Virus record (IMG/VR): IMGVR_UViG_3300033388_007730
Span: 155,189-219,188 of that record
Strand: one strand, 5' to 3'
Length of the DNA stretch: 64,000 nt
Shown here in pieces: positions 11,692 to 49,853 of this stretch. How positions within the stretch are numbered: position 1 is the first letter of the stretch; the number at the start of each line of letters is the position of its first letter. Below the pieces are notes generated by a model, which was not told where the DNA came from, searched no databases, and worked only from the letters and a program-made list of their open reading frames with translations. A program made the position numbers and the translations under genes.

Positions 11692-11719
11692 TTGAAAGTG
11701 ATTATGAATATGGTATATT
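11692..11719 (+). promoter_or_regulatory. Sigma70-like promoter TTGAAA-N16-TATATT
   Basis: Same TTGAAAGTGA start as promoters at 29860, 46827, 55116. Confidence 0.55.
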
Positions 11720-26007: not shown

Positions 26008-28380
26008 ATGGAAGATATAAATATCAAATCATTATTACAAGGTGGAATTCGTAAAGATCCAGAAGATGATAGAGATTTTATTTTTACAACACCACATATT
26101 CCTGATCATACTGTCTTGGGAAGTGCTGATTCTATTCCATTAAAAATAGATCATTCTAATAAGATGGGTTCGGTTAAGTTTCAAGGTGCGTTAGGATGCC
26201 ATGATATTAGAACAGAAATACTTACAGAAAAAGGTTGGAAACTATTTAAAGATTTGGATAAAGAAGAAAAAGTAGCTACCGTTAATCCTAATACCCATGA
26301 AATTGAATATCAAGAGCCAATTAATTATTTAGAATATGATTATGAAGGAGATATGTATTATTTTCACCATAAAAGTGGATTAGATGCTATGGTTACTCCT
26401 AATCATAAGATGTATGTCAAGAAATGGGATAATAAAAATATGACATTAAAAGAAGAATTTGAATTCATTGAAGCACAAAATATGGGTTGGTATTCTGGAT
26501 TGTTGACAAAAATTGATTGGGATGGGATCTCTCCCAAAACAATGAAAATGCCAGATGTTGAGATAGGACAAAGAAATGGAAGCAAAAAACAATCTATAAG
26601 AATAGGTAAAGAAATTGATACTACTAATTTCATTACATTTTTGGGATTATATTTAGCAGAGGGCTGTTGTTATCGTCCTGAGGGTAGTGGATCTTACAGA
26701 ATTGAGATCGCCGCTAGTGACAATAATGATAGGAAAAATGAAGTTATTGAAATTATTGATGATTTGCCGTATAAATATACTATTTATCATGATAGGATAA
26801 CAATATGGAATAAATCTTTATATACATTTCTTAAGCCTTTTGGGAATGTTTATACTAAGTCAGTACCAAGATTTGTTATGGATTTGAATAAAAAGGATAT
26901 CGCTGCATTTATGTATGGTTATTATTTAGGAGATGGATCTTTTCATGATAATGGGGCAAGGACAGGGTATTCGGTATCTGAACATTTAATTGATGATCTT
27001 CAAGAACTATCTTTGAAAATAGGGGTATATAGTAGGAAAAAAAGTAGATCACCTAGAATTGCATATATTAAAGGTAGAAAAATTTTTGGTAAAGAAAGTT
27101 ATGAACTTCATGAAAGACAAATAGATACGAAGTTGTCGATAGATAGAAATAAATATTCATCCAAAGTTCCATATAATAATAAAGTATATTGTGTAGAAGT
27201 CCCTAATCACATACTTATTACTAGAAGGGGTGGTTGTATTCTAATTTCTGGCAATTCGTGCGTAGCGTTTGCAGCTTGTGCTTTAAAAGAGTGGCAAGAA
27301 ACAATAGAACATGAAAAGGAAGTTTTGGCAGGGAAAAAAGATCATAGAGAAGGTAAAGAATATAATTTGTCTGAACAGTGGATTTATTGGAATTGTAAAA
27401 AAATAGATCCATGGCCTAATTCTGAAGGAACAAATCTGAGATCAGCTATGAGAGTATTAAATAAGATTGGAGTTCCTACCGAACAAGCTTGGGGTTACAC
27501 TGATGATAAGGTGAACATTGGTGAACCTGAAAGCTGGGCATATATGATAGCAAGGTGGAATTTAATAGGGTCTTATTGGAGAATATCAGGATTAGATCAA
27601 ATTAAAAAAGCATTGATCGAGAGTCCTATTATTATTGGGATGGCTTGTTTTAGAGAAATGTATGGTAATTTAGAACATGGTTTAATACCTTATCCTGCTA
27701 ATCCTGGAGAAGTAATGTCTCATCATGCTGTTTGTGTTGTTGGTTATGATGAAGAGAAAAAACTCTTAAAATTTAAAAATAGTTGGTCTAAGTTCTGGGG
27801 AGATGTTGGTTATGGATATATACCTTATGATTATGTAAGAGATTTTGTATGGGATGCGTGGATTGCTAGAGATATTAGTGTAACTCATGAAATGCTTGAA
27901 GGTACTAGATTATTGGTAGGTGCAGATGTACCAACAGTAATAGAGATAGCTGAGACACCACTTATACAAAAAGATACAGAAGAGAATTTTTCTTTTGTAG
28001 GATTTAAGTATCCTTCTCTTTTAGATACTTTTTCTATTATTAAAGATATTTTTGGAGTTCCAGAAATAGAGATATTTAGAGCTTCTAAAAAGGTGGGAGT
28101 TAAATTAGAAGATTCTTCATCTATTAACTTATTCTGTAAAAAATATTTTGCTGAGTTTAGAAAAGAATCTGTAAAGAAATATGGATTTGAAGTCGATGTT
28201 ATTAAAGTGGATGATGAATATCCAATTATTGGTATTTGTTTGTGTGAAAAAGAAATTAGTGATAAATTTGATGAAAATCAGATAAAGATAGAAGATGTAA
28301 TGAAAAAAGTGGTTGGCATGAGAGATATATTGGCTCTTGGCAAAGATATAATAATTTACAATGGTGTGAGAAAATATTAA
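26008..28380 (+). CDS. Papain-family (C1A) cysteine protease containing an intein
   Basis: After intein removal QGALG/SCVAFA; LSEQWIY, HAVCVVGYD, KNSW...WGD.GY. Confidence 0.9.
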   Translation: MEDINIKSLLQGGIRKDPEDDRDFIFTTPHIPDHTVLGSADSIPLKIDHSNKMGSVKFQGALGCHDIRTEILTEKGWKLFKDLDKEEKVATVNPNTHEIEYQEPINYLEYDYEGDMYYFHHKSGLDAMVTPNHKMYVKKWDNKNMTLKEEFEFIEAQNMGWYSGLLTKIDWDGISPKTMKMPDVEIGQRNGSKKQSIRIGKEIDTTNFITFLGLYLAEGCCYRPEGSGSYRIEIAASDNNDRKNEVIEIIDDLPYKYTIYHDRITIWNKSLYTFLKPFGNVYTKSVPRFVMDLNKKDIAAFMYGYYLGDGSFHDNGARTGYSVSEHLIDDLQELSLKIGVYSRKKSRSPRIAYIKGRKIFGKESYELHERQIDTKLSIDRNKYSSKVPYNNKVYCVEVPNHILITRRGGCILISGNSCVAFAACALKEWQETIEHEKEVLAGKKDHREGKEYNLSEQWIYWNCKKIDPWPNSEGTNLRSAMRVLNKIGVPTEQAWGYTDDKVNIGEPESWAYMIARWNLIGSYWRISGLDQIKKALIESPIIIGMACFREMYGNLEHGLIPYPANPGEVMSHHAVCVVGYDEEKKLLKFKNSWSKFWGDVGYGYIPYDYVRDFVWDAWIARDISVTHEMLEGTRLLVGADVPTVIEIAETPLIQKDTEENFSFVGFKYPSLLDTFSIIKDIFGVPEIEIFRASKKVGVKLEDSSSINLFCKKYFAEFRKESVKKYGFEVDVIKVDDEYPIIGICLCEKEISDKFDENQIKIEDVMKKVVGMRDILALGKDIIIYNGVRKY
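26197..27255 (+). mobile_element. Contiguous intein (353 aa) with LAGLIDADG endonuclease
   Basis: Starts CHDIRTEILT, block B VTPNH, LGLYLAEG and GYYLGDG, ends VYCVEV...SGN before Ser. Confidence 0.92.
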
Positions 28381-40296: not shown

Positions 40297-41097
40297 ATGA
40301 GTAGTAGTTTAATTATACAAGTTAGTGAAATTAAAGACGTAAGAAATCATCCAAATGCTGATAGACTTGATATTATCTCTATTAAAGGTAAAGGATGGGA
40401 GACAATTGTTAAGAGAGATGAGTATAAGGTAGGAGATGTAGTTATTTATATTCCCACAGATGTTATTCTTCCTCTTGAATTGGTAGAGAAGCTTGGGATT
40501 GCGAATTACTTAGCTGGAAAGCAGAAGAATAGAGTTAAGTGCGCAAGACTCCGTGGTGAGATGTCTTATGGTTTGGTTATTCCTAATGAAAAGAATTGGG
40601 AAGTAGGACGAGATGTTGCGGCAGAATTGGGTATTGTAAAATACGAGCCTCCTGTCAGAGCTATGGCTGGTGACGCTGCTCCAGAGGATTCAACTTTTCA
40701 TCGTTATACTGATATTGAGAATATCAATAACTTTCCTGATATTTTCAAAGATGGTGAGATGGTTGTTGCTACAGAAAAAATTGATGGATGTTTTAGATAT
40801 GATCAAAAGGTTTCTCTTGTCAACGGAGAGCAAATTTCTATCTCAGAAGTTGAGATTGGAGATATGGTTCTTTCTTATGATGAAAAAGAGGGCGAATTTG
40901 TGGCATCTAAAGTTGAGGATGTTATTATTCAAAATGTCTCTAAACAATGGGTAGAATTATCGTTTGATAATGGAAAAGAAATTGTTTGTACTGCTGATCA
41001 TTTATTCTTAACTAAGAACAGAAGATGGGTAGAGGCTGGTGATCTGGAAGAAGAAGATGAATTAGTTACGATGGATGAAGAATTTGAAAATAAATAA
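40297..41097 (+). CDS. DRB0094-family RNA ligase N-fragment fused to IntN (40789-41094)
   Basis: HPNADRLD, LRG..SYGL, KYEPP, TEKIDG then CFRYD..CTADH. Confidence 0.88.
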   Translation: MSSSLIIQVSEIKDVRNHPNADRLDIISIKGKGWETIVKRDEYKVGDVVIYIPTDVILPLELVEKLGIANYLAGKQKNRVKCARLRGEMSYGLVIPNEKNWEVGRDVAAELGIVKYEPPVRAMAGDAAPEDSTFHRYTDIENINNFPDIFKDGEMVVATEKIDGCFRYDQKVSLVNGEQISISEVEIGDMVLSYDEKEGEFVASKVEDVIIQNVSKQWVELSFDNGKEIVCTADHLFLTKNRRWVEAGDLEEEDELVTMDEEFENK

Positions 41098-41156
41098 GAG
41101 AATAATCTCTACTGGTTAGAATATATATAGAAAGAGTTAAGCCAGTGGAGATTATT

Positions 41157-41283
41157 ATGGTAAAAAACAATTAAATCTATGTTTAGAATATGGGAAAAAG
41201 ATATAAAAAAAGATTTAATGTCACAGATCGAAAGGATTAGAAGTGAAATTGATAAGAAAAAGGCTGCTCGAACAAAGTTATAA
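41157..41283 (+). pseudogene. Remnant of deleted Vsr/DUF559-like endonuclease between split-intein halves
   Basis: RBS plus MVKNN stop, then FRIWEKDIKK...KL stop overlapping IntC start. Confidence 0.5.
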
Positions 41284-41971
41284 GTGCTGGGATCTAATTA
41301 TTGAAGGAGATCATCATAATTATTTAGTGGAGGGTGCGGTTGTTCATAACAGCAATAATAGGGTAGGTTTTGAGATTTCAGAGCCAGATCAGGATGGAAG
41401 TGTTTATGTTGAAATGAAAGCTGGTTCTAATAAGTTGAAGAGAAAACGTCCTCCAACAGAAAAAATGGCAGAGAATATTTATTGGTTTTCTCAATCTCTT
41501 GACTCTGTGAAGGGGTTACTCAATCATCTTGCTGAAGATGTTGGAGTTAAAAAGACTGTCGTTCTTTATGGTGAGGTTTATGGCAGAGTTCGTGGTGGTC
41601 ATAAGTCTCTTCATTATGGAAAGCCTGGAACTTTGAACTTTGCAGCATTTAGTTTGAAGATTGATGGTAAGTATGTTTCTTGGGATGTTTTTAAACGTCT
41701 GTGTGAGATTTTTGATGTACCTACTGTCCCTGTTGTTGGTATTTTTCCATTTAGCATGGAAAGAGCAAGAGAGTTAGCAACTGGTGATTCTCTTCTTGCA
41801 GCTAAGAATGGCACAAAGCATATGAGAGAAGGAATTGTTCTTTGTGCTTTTGAAGAGAGAGATGAAATGAAGACCAGGAGAGCTATTTTAAAGATGCTTA
41901 ATCCTGATTACCTTATCCTTAAAAATAAGAGTTATGCTAAGGGTGAGGCTACTGATTTTACAGATATGTAA
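41243..41971 (+). CDS. IntC (36 aa, 41243-41350) fused to RNA ligase C-fragment
   Basis: WDL.IEG.HHNYLVEGAVVHN then Ser; YGEVYG, REGIV, LK..NPDYL. Confidence 0.88.
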   Translation: MKLIRKRLLEQSYKCWDLIIEGDHHNYLVEGAVVHNSNNRVGFEISEPDQDGSVYVEMKAGSNKLKRKRPPTEKMAENIYWFSQSLDSVKGLLNHLAEDVGVKKTVVLYGEVYGRVRGGHKSLHYGKPGTLNFAAFSLKIDGKYVSWDVFKRLCEIFDVPTVPVVGIFPFSMERARELATGDSLLAAKNGTKHMREGIVLCAFEERDEMKTRRAILKMLNPDYLILKNKSYAKGEATDFTDM

Positions 41972-41977
41972 TATGAT

Positions 41978-42013
41978 GTTCAGCCTTTGGAGGGGGAGGC
42001 TGAGCATTTTTTT
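41978..42013 (+). terminator. Rho-independent terminator
   Basis: gttcagcct/aggctgagc plus T7. Confidence 0.7.
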
Positions 42014-42029
42014 ATTTGAGAGGTAAGCT

Positions 42030-45149: not shown

Positions 45150-45497
45150 ATGATAGGTAAATTAATAAAATTTATTATTGCTTGGTTTAGAATACCTAGA
45201 GGACCATACTGTTACACGATTAAAGAGGTAATTAGAGACCCTTCAGGTAATGCTCCTTCAATGATTCGCTCTAAAGTTTGTCCTTACTGGGGGATTAGGA
45301 AAGATTTGCCAGCACAGGCTAATGGATATTGTAGGTATTTAAGAGTCACAGATGTAGATCAGAATAATGATCCAGAATCAGAGTTCGTCTGCACTGTAAA
45401 GGAGACAGGTGAGAAGAGTGTTCTTAAAGCTCCAGATATACCATTTGGTACAAGTCGTTTGTGGGATCAATGTAAAGAGTGTGGAATAAAGGAATAG
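45150..45497 (+). CDS. Cys-rich hypothetical protein
   Basis: IP.GPYCY, CPYW, GYC.YL, LWDQCKECG. Confidence 0.65.
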   Translation: MIGKLIKFIIAWFRIPRGPYCYTIKEVIRDPSGNAPSMIRSKVCPYWGIRKDLPAQANGYCRYLRVTDVDQNNDPESEFVCTVKETGEKSVLKAPDIPFGTSRLWDQCKECGIKE

Positions 45498-45975
45498 GTG
45501 AACTACCTCCTCCATAAAGGGGAGGCTTTTTAGATCTTTTACAACTGAATAATGACTAGATTGAGCCAGCTGTGCTTTTCTACAGTTACTTACATCAACT
45601 ATATTTTCTAAAGTAGAAAATATAGTTGATACAGAGGTTTCTGTATCCCTAAGCATTGTATTTCTACGTTCCGTAGAAATTAAAGTTTTTAATCCTTCAG
45701 TTTCGATACATTGAGCACTTTTCAAGTCTCTATCTTCTGTATAGCCACAAGAACAGTTATAAGTTCTCTGCCATACAGGTAGTTTATTTTTAGCTTTACA
45801 GACAGGGCAAAGTTGAGTAGAGGGAAAGAACTTATCAACCATTACAGATGTATGTGCTTTTTTCTTTAAAGCACTAATTATTCCACCTATAGCAGTATTT
45901 TGAATTTTCTTTCCGTGTCTCCCAGCTTTCCAGGCTTTGATGCTCTCATCCTGAAAGATGATATATTCAAGGTTG
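45498..45975 (-). mobile_element. tnpB: Truncated IS200/IS605-family element: TnpB C-terminal fragment with intact right end
   Basis: FPSTQLCPVC..R.Y.C.CG...DRD..SA; minus strand ends AAGCCTCCCCTTTATGGAGGAGGTAGTTCAC. Confidence 0.8.
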
Positions 45976-46140
45976 ATTTCGGATTGTGGAGGGATTTGGA
46001 TAAGAAGGACTCGTAACGTTACAGTAGATAAAGATGATGCTAAACTTATCCATGAGTTTAGTAGGAATAGAGTTAAGAGGTTGAGAATGATGAGCAAATC
46101 AAATCCAGTATCTAGAGAAGAGTTAATAGATTTAGATTAG
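45958..46140 (+). pseudogene. Probable 3' remnant of a gene ending SREELIDLD
   Basis: Begins inside the TnpB fragment; shared motif variant. Confidence 0.5.
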
Positions 46141-46895: not shown

Positions 46896-47894
46896 ATGAA
46901 TACAGTTTATAGAGTATCGAGTAACGGGGGAGCACCAGCAAGGGCATCAGTACATAAAGTGTTAGATGGTAGTTCTGGAACACCAATACTCACTTCACCT
47001 GTTGAGAGAAAGAGTGTTGGAGTGGGAGCTTTAAAAGAAGCAGAAAAAATCTGTGATTATCACGATGATGGTGGTGATGAGGATGAGGATTGTTATGCTA
47101 ATCCAACTGGAATTGAAGATAGTTGTTTAAATGAAGATAATGATGTTGCTACTGTGAAGTTTGCGGAAGAGATAAAAGTAGATTTCATTCCGACCGTGGA
47201 TTTTAGAATAATGTGTAGATTTCTTGAAGCTAGTTCTGTTAATGATATTAAAAATCACCCATTCTCTGCCCCACCACTCATAACATTAATCCTCATGGAG
47301 GCATTACCTGGATATATGAAATCAAAAGATTATTCTTTTGCAGGAGAATTAAATTTTGATTGTCATGGTAATTCTATTCCACCAGAAAAAAATCCATGGA
47401 TAGTAGATGGGAAAGAGACAGCATTCACGATTCAAGGATTTTTGTATTTTGAATCTAATAGTGGCAAAAAAGAAGACAATGTTTGTTTCTTCTTATTCGC
47501 AGATTTAGAAAGAGGTGGTGCAGCCATAACATGTTATACTAGAGATGTTTTTAAATCTAAAACTGTTATAGGAGAGTTGCAGGAATATTCAAAGAGTCAT
47601 AATTGCTTGAGAGGTGCTAAGCTTAAAGATGTTAATATGTTCACTGCCTCTTTTACTGAGGTTGATAATTGCCCATCATATAACTGGGAAAATTATTATT
47701 ATCCAAAAAGTATAATTAATTTGTTTGACTTAGAAGTTTTTGAGTTTGTTAAAAACTCTGAGAGATATAATGAGTGTGGCATAACAAAGCGTGGTCTCAT
47801 TATGCATGGTAAACCAGGTTGTGTTTTGTCAGATACAAAAATAAAAATTAGAAAAAAGAAAAAAGAAGGAAAACATAATATTATTATAGAATAA
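46896..47894 (+). CDS. AAA+ ATPase N-fragment fused to 24-aa IntN (47820-47891)
   Basis: KRGLIMHGKPG then CVLSDTKIKI-stop. Confidence 0.85.
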   Translation: MNTVYRVSSNGGAPARASVHKVLDGSSGTPILTSPVERKSVGVGALKEAEKICDYHDDGGDEDEDCYANPTGIEDSCLNEDNDVATVKFAEEIKVDFIPTVDFRIMCRFLEASSVNDIKNHPFSAPPLITLILMEALPGYMKSKDYSFAGELNFDCHGNSIPPEKNPWIVDGKETAFTIQGFLYFESNSGKKEDNVCFFLFADLERGGAAITCYTRDVFKSKTVIGELQEYSKSHNCLRGAKLKDVNMFTASFTEVDNCPSYNWENYYYPKSIINLFDLEVFEFVKNSERYNECGITKRGLIMHGKPGCVLSDTKIKIRKKKKEGKHNIIIE

Positions 47895-47938
47895 TAGTAT
47901 AGTCCAATTACGGGTAATCCACAAAGGAGAATGCTATT

Positions 47939-48853
47939 ATGAAAAAAGAAATGTTTTTGAGAAATTGTCCTAAATGTGGCAAAGAATTAAGTTATACAAA
48001 TAAGAAAAATAGAAATACCGCTATTAAAAAGAAGAGGCTTTGTGGATCTTGTGCTTCGGTGGAGAGGAATCAGAAATATGGTAACAATAAAAAATTTATA
48101 GAAACATATGGGGTAAAAGGGAAGTGGATAGGTAAAAAAAATCCTTTCTATGGGAAACATCATTCTGAAGAATCTCTTGCAAAAATGCAAAAAAATAAAG
48201 ATTTTAGCACTTTTAAAAGTAAAAAGTTTAAAGATAAGATGTCCAAAATATCTTCTGGTAAAAATAATCCTATGTATGGGAAAAATTATTATGATATATG
48301 GGTAGAAAAATACGGGGAGAAAGAAGCCAATAAAAAAATGGCGATACTTAGGAAAGAGAAATCTATTCAGACTTCCGGCAAAAATAATCCTATGTATGGG
48401 AAACCAGCACCACAAGGGTCAGGAAATGGATGGAGTGGGTGGTATAAAGGATGGTTCTTCAGAAGCATTAAAGAATTGTCTTATATGGTAAATGTTATTG
48501 AAGTGAATGGATTTCAGTGGAGAACAGGAGAAACAAAAGATTTATGTATAAAGTATACTAGCTATGATGGGACGGAAAGAACTTATAGGGCAGATTTTTT
48601 AGTCGAGGAGAAAAAGTTAGTTGAAGTGAAACCTATAAAATTGTTTAATACCCCAAAAAATTTATTAAAAAAACAAGCAGCTGTTAAATTTTGTAAAAAA
48701 AATGGTTATGATTATGAGGTAGTTGATGTAAGATTGTTAGATTTTGAAAAAATGGAGAGTCTTTATAATCAAAAAAAGATTAGATTTACGAAAAAATATA
48801 AAAAAAAATATGAGCAATACATAAATAGGAGAAAAAATGATGGAGATAAGTGA
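47939..48853 (+). CDS. Homing endonuclease (NUMOD3-like repeats, TnsA-like PD-(D/E)xK) between split-intein halves
   Basis: GKNNPMYGK x2, FRS..E, YRADF..VEVKP. Confidence 0.8.
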   Translation: MKKEMFLRNCPKCGKELSYTNKKNRNTAIKKKRLCGSCASVERNQKYGNNKKFIETYGVKGKWIGKKNPFYGKHHSEESLAKMQKNKDFSTFKSKKFKDKMSKISSGKNNPMYGKNYYDIWVEKYGEKEANKKMAILRKEKSIQTSGKNNPMYGKPAPQGSGNGWSGWYKGWFFRSIKELSYMVNVIEVNGFQWRTGETKDLCIKYTSYDGTERTYRADFLVEEKKLVEVKPIKLFNTPKNLLKKQAAVKFCKKNGYDYEVVDVRLLDFEKMESLYNQKKIRFTKKYKKKYEQYINRRKNDGDK

Positions 48854-49853
48854 ACAAAAAGTTGTAGCTATTAGTGATTTTTTTAATCTTGTAGAGGACG
48901 AAGGTGGGATTTATGAAGTAGAAACTCCTCAAGGATGGGTAGAAATAGGAGATTTAGTCAAAAAGTCTAATAAAGAATGTTATGCTTTATTAACTGATAA
49001 TTATAATGAAATTAGAGGATCTAATGATCATTATGTGGAGACTAAAAGAGGGTGGGTAAAATTAGAAGATATAGATGTTAAGAATGATATTGTTTATACC
49101 GATGAAGGAGAAGAATTAGTAGTCTCTTTAGAAAGTATTGGAGTTCATGATACATTTGATTTAGAAGTTTTAAATGATGAGCATAAATACTATGCCAATG
49201 GAATTGTTAGCCATAATACAGGAAAAACAACAATTGGTAATATCATTTGTAATATGATACCAGATCATACCGTTATATGGATAACTCCTGAAATTTTAGC
49301 GGAGAATATGCATCGTGCTTTTAATTCTATTAAGTCATTATATAAATTGGCAGATTTTGTTTCTCCTTGTGTTATTATACTTGAGGATTTAGATTTATTT
49401 GGCAATGATCGAGACAAAGGTGGAGATATATTATCTCTTGGTGCTTTGATGAATGTTTTAGATGGTGTCAATTCTATTAAAAACGCTGTTACAATAGGAA
49501 CTACTAATAGATTAAGTTCCATTGAATCAGCTTTGAAGAATAGACCAGGAAGGTTTGACAGAGTTATAGAAATACCAGCACTTCCGAAAGAATTGAGAAA
49601 GAAGATGTTCAGAGATAGATTAAAAGGATGGACTGTTGAAAAGGGTGCATTGGATTATATCGTTGAGAACACTAATAAATGGACTGGAGCAGAAGCACAA
49701 GAATTTATCAATAGTTTGAATTTGAAACATATTGGCAGTAATAAGAAAAAGAAGAAAGTTACTATAGTGTGGGCAGAAGAGATTATCAAAACTATGAATA
49801 AATTTGGAGTGGGAGAAGCAAGTAGTTCATTCGGATTCGGTGCTGATAAATGA
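48837..49853 (+). CDS. IntC (127 aa, 48837-49217) fused to AAA+ ATPase C-fragment
   Basis: V.TPQGW, SNDH, FDLEV..H.YYANGIVSHN then TGKT; ILEDLD, TTNR, NRPGRFDR. Confidence 0.9.
   Translation: MMEISEQKVVAISDFFNLVEDEGGIYEVETPQGWVEIGDLVKKSNKECYALLTDNYNEIRGSNDHYVETKRGWVKLEDIDVKNDIVYTDEGEELVVSLESIGVHDTFDLEVLNDEHKYYANGIVSHNTGKTTIGNIICNMIPDHTVIWITPEILAENMHRAFNSIKSLYKLADFVSPCVIILEDLDLFGNDRDKGGDILSLGALMNVLDGVNSIKNAVTIGTTNRLSSIESALKNRPGRFDRVIEIPALPKELRKKMFRDRLKGWTVEKGALDYIVENTNKWTGAEAQEFINSLNLKHIGSNKKKKKVTIVWAEEIIKTMNKFGVGEASSSFGFGADK

Follow-up and report, generated by a model that had tools for sequence, protein, structure and literature searches.

The closest described systems are the fractured genes surveyed by Dassa et al. 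2009 (PMC2677866), whose published model holds that a nuclease was the original splitter of the intein. Hairpins were found in 15 of the 16 fractured loci and TATAAATA in ten of them, the nuclease gene overlapped IntC by 6-69 bp, and the invading element was argued to supply the start of the downstream half. One locus, gp41-7, has lost its nuclease and kept the hairpin, which is step III of the model. The EDxHD family of nucleases, treated by Taylor et al. 2011 (PMC3239194), was first described in these fractured genes (Dassa et al. 2009, PMC2677866).

The locus described here lies in the window, that is the whole stretch of 64,000 nucleotides that was analysed and that forms the last 64 kb of the 219,188-bp virus record IMGVR_UViG_3300033388_007730. 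As a record of this length is rated only 44% complete (CheckV estimate), it should come from a very large (jumbo) phage. The record contains 31.6% G+C and nearly every gene is on the + strand.

An RNA ligase is encoded there in two halves, which are separate neighbouring open reading frames on the + strand (40297-41097 and 41243-41971), as in the fractured genes. The first starts with an N-extein of 164 aa (40297-40788; Pfam PF21189) made of a PHA02142-type OB-fold and the start of the nucleotidyltransferase, and the gene is split directly after motif I, KIDG. An IntN of 102 aa follows (40789-41097) with Hint and Intein_splicing matches and a TAA stop. The second half contains an IntC of 36 aa (41243-41350), which starts with GTG and was recognized by alignment with eight allelic IntCs of 35 aa, and the ligase C-extein (41351-41971; RNA_ligase, Pfam PF09414). 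Immediately 3' of it, a consensus scan alone gave a terminator-like hairpin with a T run (41975-42018, + strand). Sequence features of a naturally split intein with the canonical split point are present, namely Cys at the first IntN residue, CTADH as the TxxH block, VVHN at the end of IntC and Ser at +1. Compared with ligases that lack an intein, the N-extein has 85% identity to the N half of P0006 and the C-extein 73-75% identity to P0006 and P0007. In the alignment, IntN is 41-63% identical to seven allelic IntNs, and the intein of all split relatives occupies one common site after K(I/L)(D/H)G. Protein trans-splicing presumably still joins the two halves into one ligase. Unlike the hosts listed by Dassa et al. 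(gp41, IMPDH, DnaE, NrdA, NrdJ, DNA ligase and terminase; PMC2677866), the host is an RNA ligase of the PHA02142/TIGR02306 type, for which a limited literature search found no earlier report as a split-intein host. A ligase of this type, interrupted right after KIDG, can thus be added to the hosts of split inteins.

The two halves are separated by 145 nt (41098-41242) that extend from the IntN stop codon (41095-41097) to the GTG start of IntC (41243). This spacer had drawn attention in the original prediction, which read it as the fossil of the endonuclease that split the intein and pointed to a GGAG, a MVKNN-stop peptide and an open frame running over the start of IntC. All of these are present in the sequence: GGAG lies at 41147-41150, the ATG at 41157 opens M-V-K-N-N before a TAA at 41172-41174, and an open reading frame of 34 codons (MFRIWEKD...TKL) occupies 41179-41283 in a different frame and overlaps the IntC start by 41 nt. 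As set out below, the spacer is very probably a dead free-standing Vsr-like (EDxHD) homing endonuclease gene that has suffered an internal deletion of about 710 nt.

The comparison relies on relatives of the ligase. A word search with its C half returned about 40 uninterrupted ligases and four split C halves, and among the contigs of these and of nuclease homologues six loci (L002, L004, L005, L006, L007 and L008, of which L007 and L008 were taken from viral contigs) were found to carry between IntN and IntC an intact or nearly intact gene of 266-285 aa, so that relatives with the full endonuclease at this very site do exist. In L004-L008 a complete endonuclease frame is present and its stop codon lies 32-41 nt inside the IntC gene; the same overlap of nuclease and IntC is seen in the fragments L003 and P0008 contig. 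In L002, an 11-nt stretch is missing from the nuclease gene relative to L004-L006 (L002:1155-1262), which shifts the frame before the last strand and leaves the ancestral tail readable in the +1 frame; this may reflect decay at an earlier stage or else a fault in the assembly. Other searches were less productive. Blastn with 2.7 kb of the locus against the phage collection and a single-protein scan of viral contigs with the C half gave no match, tblastn against phages gave remote ligases only, and small shares of three public sequencing runs from marine metagenomes contained relatives only, mostly inteinless.

The gene of these relatives encodes zinc ribbons followed by a nuclease domain that, judged by profile and predicted fold, is Vsr-like and belongs to the EDxHD family, as the original prediction had proposed in naming a Vsr/DUF559-like nuclease. 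A profile of six sequences searched against PDB sequences ranked E. coli Vsr first (1ODG, 1VSR, 1CW0; E ~0.005), and the aligned region includes PDFVV, FWHH and ERDRR..LIVWE of Vsr, the segments that hold Asp51, His69 and Asp97. Matches to Pfam were below threshold, with MTES_1575 in five of the six members and DUF559 in four. P0056 was modelled with AlphaFold at an average pLDDT of 76, rising to ~90 in the C-terminal domain, and Foldseek placed 1CW0 at rank 1, followed by 1VSR, 3R3P (I-Bth0305I, TM 0.80, target-normalised) and 3HRL (DUF559), with mitoribosomal chains interspersed. The invariant columns E195, D199, H202 and D229 are all present in the relatives. Searching Pfam and PDB with the single L002 nuclease gave zinc-ribbon noise only, so the link to Vsr required the family profile and the fold search. 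Vsr itself is a repair nickase and not a nuclease of mobile elements. The intact relatives resemble I-Bth0305I (3R3P; PMC3239194) in their C-terminal Vsr-fold domain, their conserved acidic and His residues and the presence of an N-terminal DNA-binding region, which is formed by zinc ribbons and not by the NUMOD2 repeats of I-Bth0305I.

At the 3' end of the spacer, the relationship with these nucleases is visible at the protein level. The profile of the nucleases of three intact relatives, compared unfiltered with all 9,914 stop-to-stop frames of the 219-kb record in six frames, matched the 34-codon frame alone (E 1.3e-5, profile positions 248-276 of 278). In the same way, BLASTP aligned its peptide with the last 25-30 residues of P0056, P0055 and P0057 at 48-56% identity (E 2e-7 to 2e-6), so that the peptide fits the extreme C-terminus of the nuclease. 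Bases shared with the IntC frame account for about half of the profile score; taken alone, the 21 residues before this overlap still give the best match of the genome, though a weak one (E 0.06 genome-wide; 9e-5 as a single comparison). The surviving peptide is homologous to the C-terminal strand and helices of the family, and corresponds in the AlphaFold model to about residues 246-273, i.e. the end of the last strand and the two C-terminal helices. Through the family profile, its IWEKD aligns with the strand LIVWECAL of E. coli Vsr (1VSR, 1CW0), a similarity that is remote (E 0.005, six-sequence profile).

The DNA is rich in A+T, the peptide is lysine-rich and of low complexity, and Pfam gave no meaningful match to the 33-34-aa peptide alone or to the L002 tail, all of which could suggest an open frame that arose by chance and resembles Vsr by coincidence. 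Such a coincidence is scarcely credible, given that the frame is the only significant match of the genome, at the exact syntenic position and register, and that the 5' end of the spacer shows an independent homology. With the BLASTP values, the genome-wide profile match and this 5' homology, a chance frame is effectively refuted.

In favour of a live small gene for a helical peptide, the frame is open, begins with ATG and ends at the ancestral stop codon; an estimated ~4% of 34-codon frames stay open at this composition. Against it, the ATG at 41179 lies at the deletion junction and is preceded by no Shine-Dalgarno sequence, IntC keeps the last 13 codons from changing, and the peptide alone has no family match. 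Moreover, a second locus of this kind, L088, has no equivalent of this ATG, only a GTG without ribosome-binding site. That the frame is a working gene is therefore highly improbable.

The 5' end of the spacer is dominated by a hairpin (41101-41156, + strand), found by folding the single sequence, in which 41101-41117 pairs with 41140-41156 in a perfect stem of 17 bp (dG -22.1 kcal/mol, z -5.9), none of 200 shuffled sequences being as stable. Its 3' arm holds the GGAG and ends 1 nt before the ATG, and the hairpin upstream of the nuclease start thus covers the ribosome-binding site, as in the fractured genes. A hairpin is present at the equivalent place in L002, L004-L008 and L088 with differing sequences, each folded alone. 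RNAalifold applied to four 5' UTRs found a poor register and little covariation signal, so that the hairpins rest on the folding of each sequence by itself; between the stems of the window and L002, one compensatory and one single-sided change were seen by eye. Phage T4 I-TevI has a translational hairpin that pairs the Shine-Dalgarno sequence of the nuclease and carries an A+T-rich, TATA-like run in its loop. The stem-loop of the endonuclease that splits nrdA in phage Aeh1, as it is summarized in PMC2677866, likewise pairs the Shine-Dalgarno sequence of the nuclease, and the window hairpin resembles it in this respect and in an A+T-rich TATA-like run in the loop.

The homology at this end is found in the DNA. 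Positions 41100-41189 align with L002 368-458 at 67 of 90 bases, with a local score of 59 against a shuffle mean of 22.8 and a maximum of 33, over a stretch that takes in the 5' UTR and hairpin as well as the start codon and the codons next to it. It is significant with L002 only, the other relatives sharing the hairpin architecture but not its sequence. Because the alignment runs through the start codon of L002, the ATG of MVKNN corresponds to the old start codon of the nuclease, and the early stop in its frame is due to a 1-nt gap just after this ATG. The remnant of the 5' coding sequence (41157-41189, + strand, from the alignment to L002) amounts to ~33 nt or ~11 codons. Both ends of the spacer are thus homologous to the nuclease gene that relatives carry at the same site, which bears out the fossil proposed in the original prediction; the role of this nuclease as the original splitter of the intein is taken from the published model.

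A promoter-like motif had also been claimed for the gap, and this part did not hold. A scan with the sigma-70 consensus found no promoter site in the gap. The hairpin loop reads TATATATA and not TATAAATA. Counts of these two words between the genes of the 219-kb record show no enrichment, and this leaves a (late) promoter in the loop without support. Another word, TTGAAAGTGA, is a candidate phage promoter element: exact copies lie upstream of gene starts on the + strand at 11692, 29860, 46827, 55116 and 62003, and 8-mers related to it show a 7- to 15-fold enrichment between the genes of the record. TTGAAAGTGA is absent from the ligase gap.

Between the two homologous ends, the position of the deletion was located with a two-piece alignment scan, a global alignment with cheap gaps having been discarded since it shattered in the A+T-rich sequence. 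The best junction is at 41189-41192 against L002 and at 41189-41190 against L004 (+ strand), and ~710 nt are absent relative to L002 positions 461-1170. What remains 3' of it is the end of the nuclease coding sequence (41190-41283, + strand, identified by BLASTP and profile search), 94 nt with the last 31 codons from WEKD and the stop; four junction codons and this tail make up the 34-codon frame. With the junction in this place, the MFRI that precedes WEKD probably derives from the 5' piece read in a new frame, and its FRI would not be the last strand of the nuclease. The proposal that RIWExDI is the C-terminus of such a nuclease therefore stands from WEKD onward, which is clearly nuclease-derived, but not for RI, which falls at the junction. 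No complete endonuclease frame is left between the halves, only the ~33 nt and the 94 nt of coding sequence, and the remnant starts after all the invariant catalytic columns (E195, D199, H202 and D229), so it cannot be a nuclease. In contrast to I-Bth0305I, the window retains no catalytic residue and only the last 31 residues.

Since the record is a metagenome assembly, the short gap might also be an artefact or a minority deletion variant of a real phage that has the whole nuclease, and a 198-nt contig in run X3 matches the hairpin at 76 of 82 bases before it diverges from the window. This is very unlikely. The junction is not flanked by any repeat on which an assembly might have collapsed, the 1-nt frameshift that follows the ATG is a further sign of decay, and the same kind of deletion is found in L088, which was assembled independently from another sample.

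L088 was found in a metagenome scan for which five split homologues served as the query. Its ligase halves are separated by 96 nt that contain a short hairpin, a GGAG and an ATG joined directly to ..TVVIVWEKD.., in a frame that reaches into IntC, and its breakpoints differ from those of the window. Its IntN and tail are closest to those of L004, in which the nuclease is intact. The tree of C-exteins places the inteinless P0006 as sister of the window (support 98/88), and an AU test rejects a grouping of the window with L088 (p 0.004). L088 thus represents a second, independent deletion, in a ligase lineage that is not sister to that of the window.

The two deletions keep the same parts, namely the hairpin, GGAG, ATG and the tail from about the WEKD codons, and in the window the 17-bp stem is perfect even though its gene is dead. 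One may thus ask whether the remnant now serves as a domesticated control cassette, its hairpin and tail (~90 nt) being kept by selection beyond the effect of the IntC overlap, because the split ligase would need them to set when, or how strongly, its IntC half is translated. Dassa et al. (PMC2677866) suggest that the invading element supplies the control signals of the downstream half, and such a role, if true, would explain the near-identical end points of the deletions in two ligase lineages. Against this, the cases number only two, a deletion of recent date would give the same picture, the L088 hairpin is much shorter and no promoter was detected in the gap. A take-over of this kind is rather doubtful, if worth keeping in mind.

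The reading of the spacer as a dead homing endonuclease gene leads to a simple history. The ancestor would have had the fractured arrangement, with N-extein and IntN, hairpin, nuclease gene, then IntC and C-extein, with the nuclease stop codon 32-41 nt into the IntC gene. A stretch of ~710 nt would then have been lost from inside the nuclease gene, and with it zinc ribbons, DNA-binding helices and the entire catalytic core. On one side this left the hairpin of the 5' UTR, in which the GGAG is buried, together with the ATG and ~11 codons that now read MVKNN-stop through a frameshift; on the other side it left the last 31 codons. The homology of both ends, their synteny, the breakpoints and the loss of the catalytic residues are read directly from the comparison with the relatives, from which we infer that the event was a deletion rather than an insertion. 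As the remnant cannot cut DNA, the element should have lost the ability to home with a nuclease of its own. The phage may still carry an intact copy at another place that acts in trans, the search having covered the 219-kb record, which is estimated to be 44% complete.

The 3' end was probably kept because the same bases provide the ribosome-binding site, the GTG and the first 13 codons of IntC. The Shine-Dalgarno sequence of IntC, AAGGA (41232-41236, + strand, located by reading the sequence), lies within nuclease-tail codons (QIERI) 6 nt before the GTG at 41243, and the block with both is conserved at the DNA level in all relatives; the first 13 codons of IntC are within tail codons as well. 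A deletion reaching further would abolish the C half of the ligase, which would place the tail under constraint. The 41-nt overlap of the nuclease 3' end with the IntC start is shared in kind with the fractured genes, and retention of the tail agrees with the argument of Dassa et al. (PMC2677866) that the downstream start is supplied by the invading element.

This kind of locus is already known. Like gp41-7 and step III of Dassa et al. 2009, the window has lost the nuclease gene while a hairpin remains upstream of the C half, and it is a well-resolved further example. Unlike in the described step III, both coding ends of the nuclease are recognisable, so that the breakpoints can be mapped, and a second independent deletion is found in a relative.

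Other members of the ligase family display further arrangements. Ligases with an intein do not group together on the extein tree but are dispersed among those without, a distribution that a mobile element would produce. P0082, a same-family RNA ligase from a Logan contig, has a contiguous mini-intein at the same KIDG site, and its linker keeps a Met exactly where the IntC of the split alleles starts; it could be a re-fused or an ancestral form. L112 is the closest relative of the N half of the window (82% identical). One base after its IntN stop begins an unrelated small membrane/coiled-coil frame (L112:848-1015), and nuclease, fossil and IntC are all absent within the 170 nt to the contig end; in this phage the ligase halves may be separated from each other. 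A related nuclease of the EDxHD type (326 aa) is also found between the IntN and IntC of a NAD-dependent DNA ligase split next to KxDG (L009:1607-5099).

The window contains two more intein loci, which the original prediction had joined with the ligase into three stages of intein fracture. An AAA ATPase gene (46896-49853) is split inside its P-loop (GKPG|C ... HN|TGKTT), with an unusually short IntN of 24 aa and an IntC of ~127 aa. Between its halves lies a gene for a NUMOD3 plus TnsA_N-like nuclease (47939-48853), which shares 17 nt with the IntC gene and whose Shine-Dalgarno sequence is covered by a hairpin. Upstream of this locus, following a GMP reductase/IMPDH-like gene, a frame on the - strand (45378-46097) matches the Cas12f1-like TNB (TnpB-type zinc-ribbon) domain. 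The third locus is a papain-like cysteine protease (26008-28380) with a contiguous LAGLIDADG intein just before the catalytic Cys motif. The elements are thus an RNA ligase with an EDxHD remnant, an AAA ATPase with a NUMOD3 plus TnsA_N-like nuclease and a papain-like protease with LAGLIDADG, and when the nuclease family of the ligase locus was compared by profile with the nuclease of the AAA locus, no relation was found (probability 4%). Three host genes with three unrelated nucleases do not form a series, and the idea of successive stages has to be given up for the three loci of the window; it holds within the ligase family across relatives.

In that family, most arrangements of the published model are seen: inteinless genes, a mini-intein in one piece, fractured genes whose nuclease is intact, one in which it is frameshifted and two in which it has lost internal sequence. 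The ligase family is therefore a useful system for testing this model. The window itself provides a base-resolved example of the decay of a homing endonuclease after gene fracture, a step that links fractured genes to split inteins free of endonuclease such as that of the cyanobacterial DnaE, and it shows a constraint on this decay, which is the overlap with the translation start of IntC.
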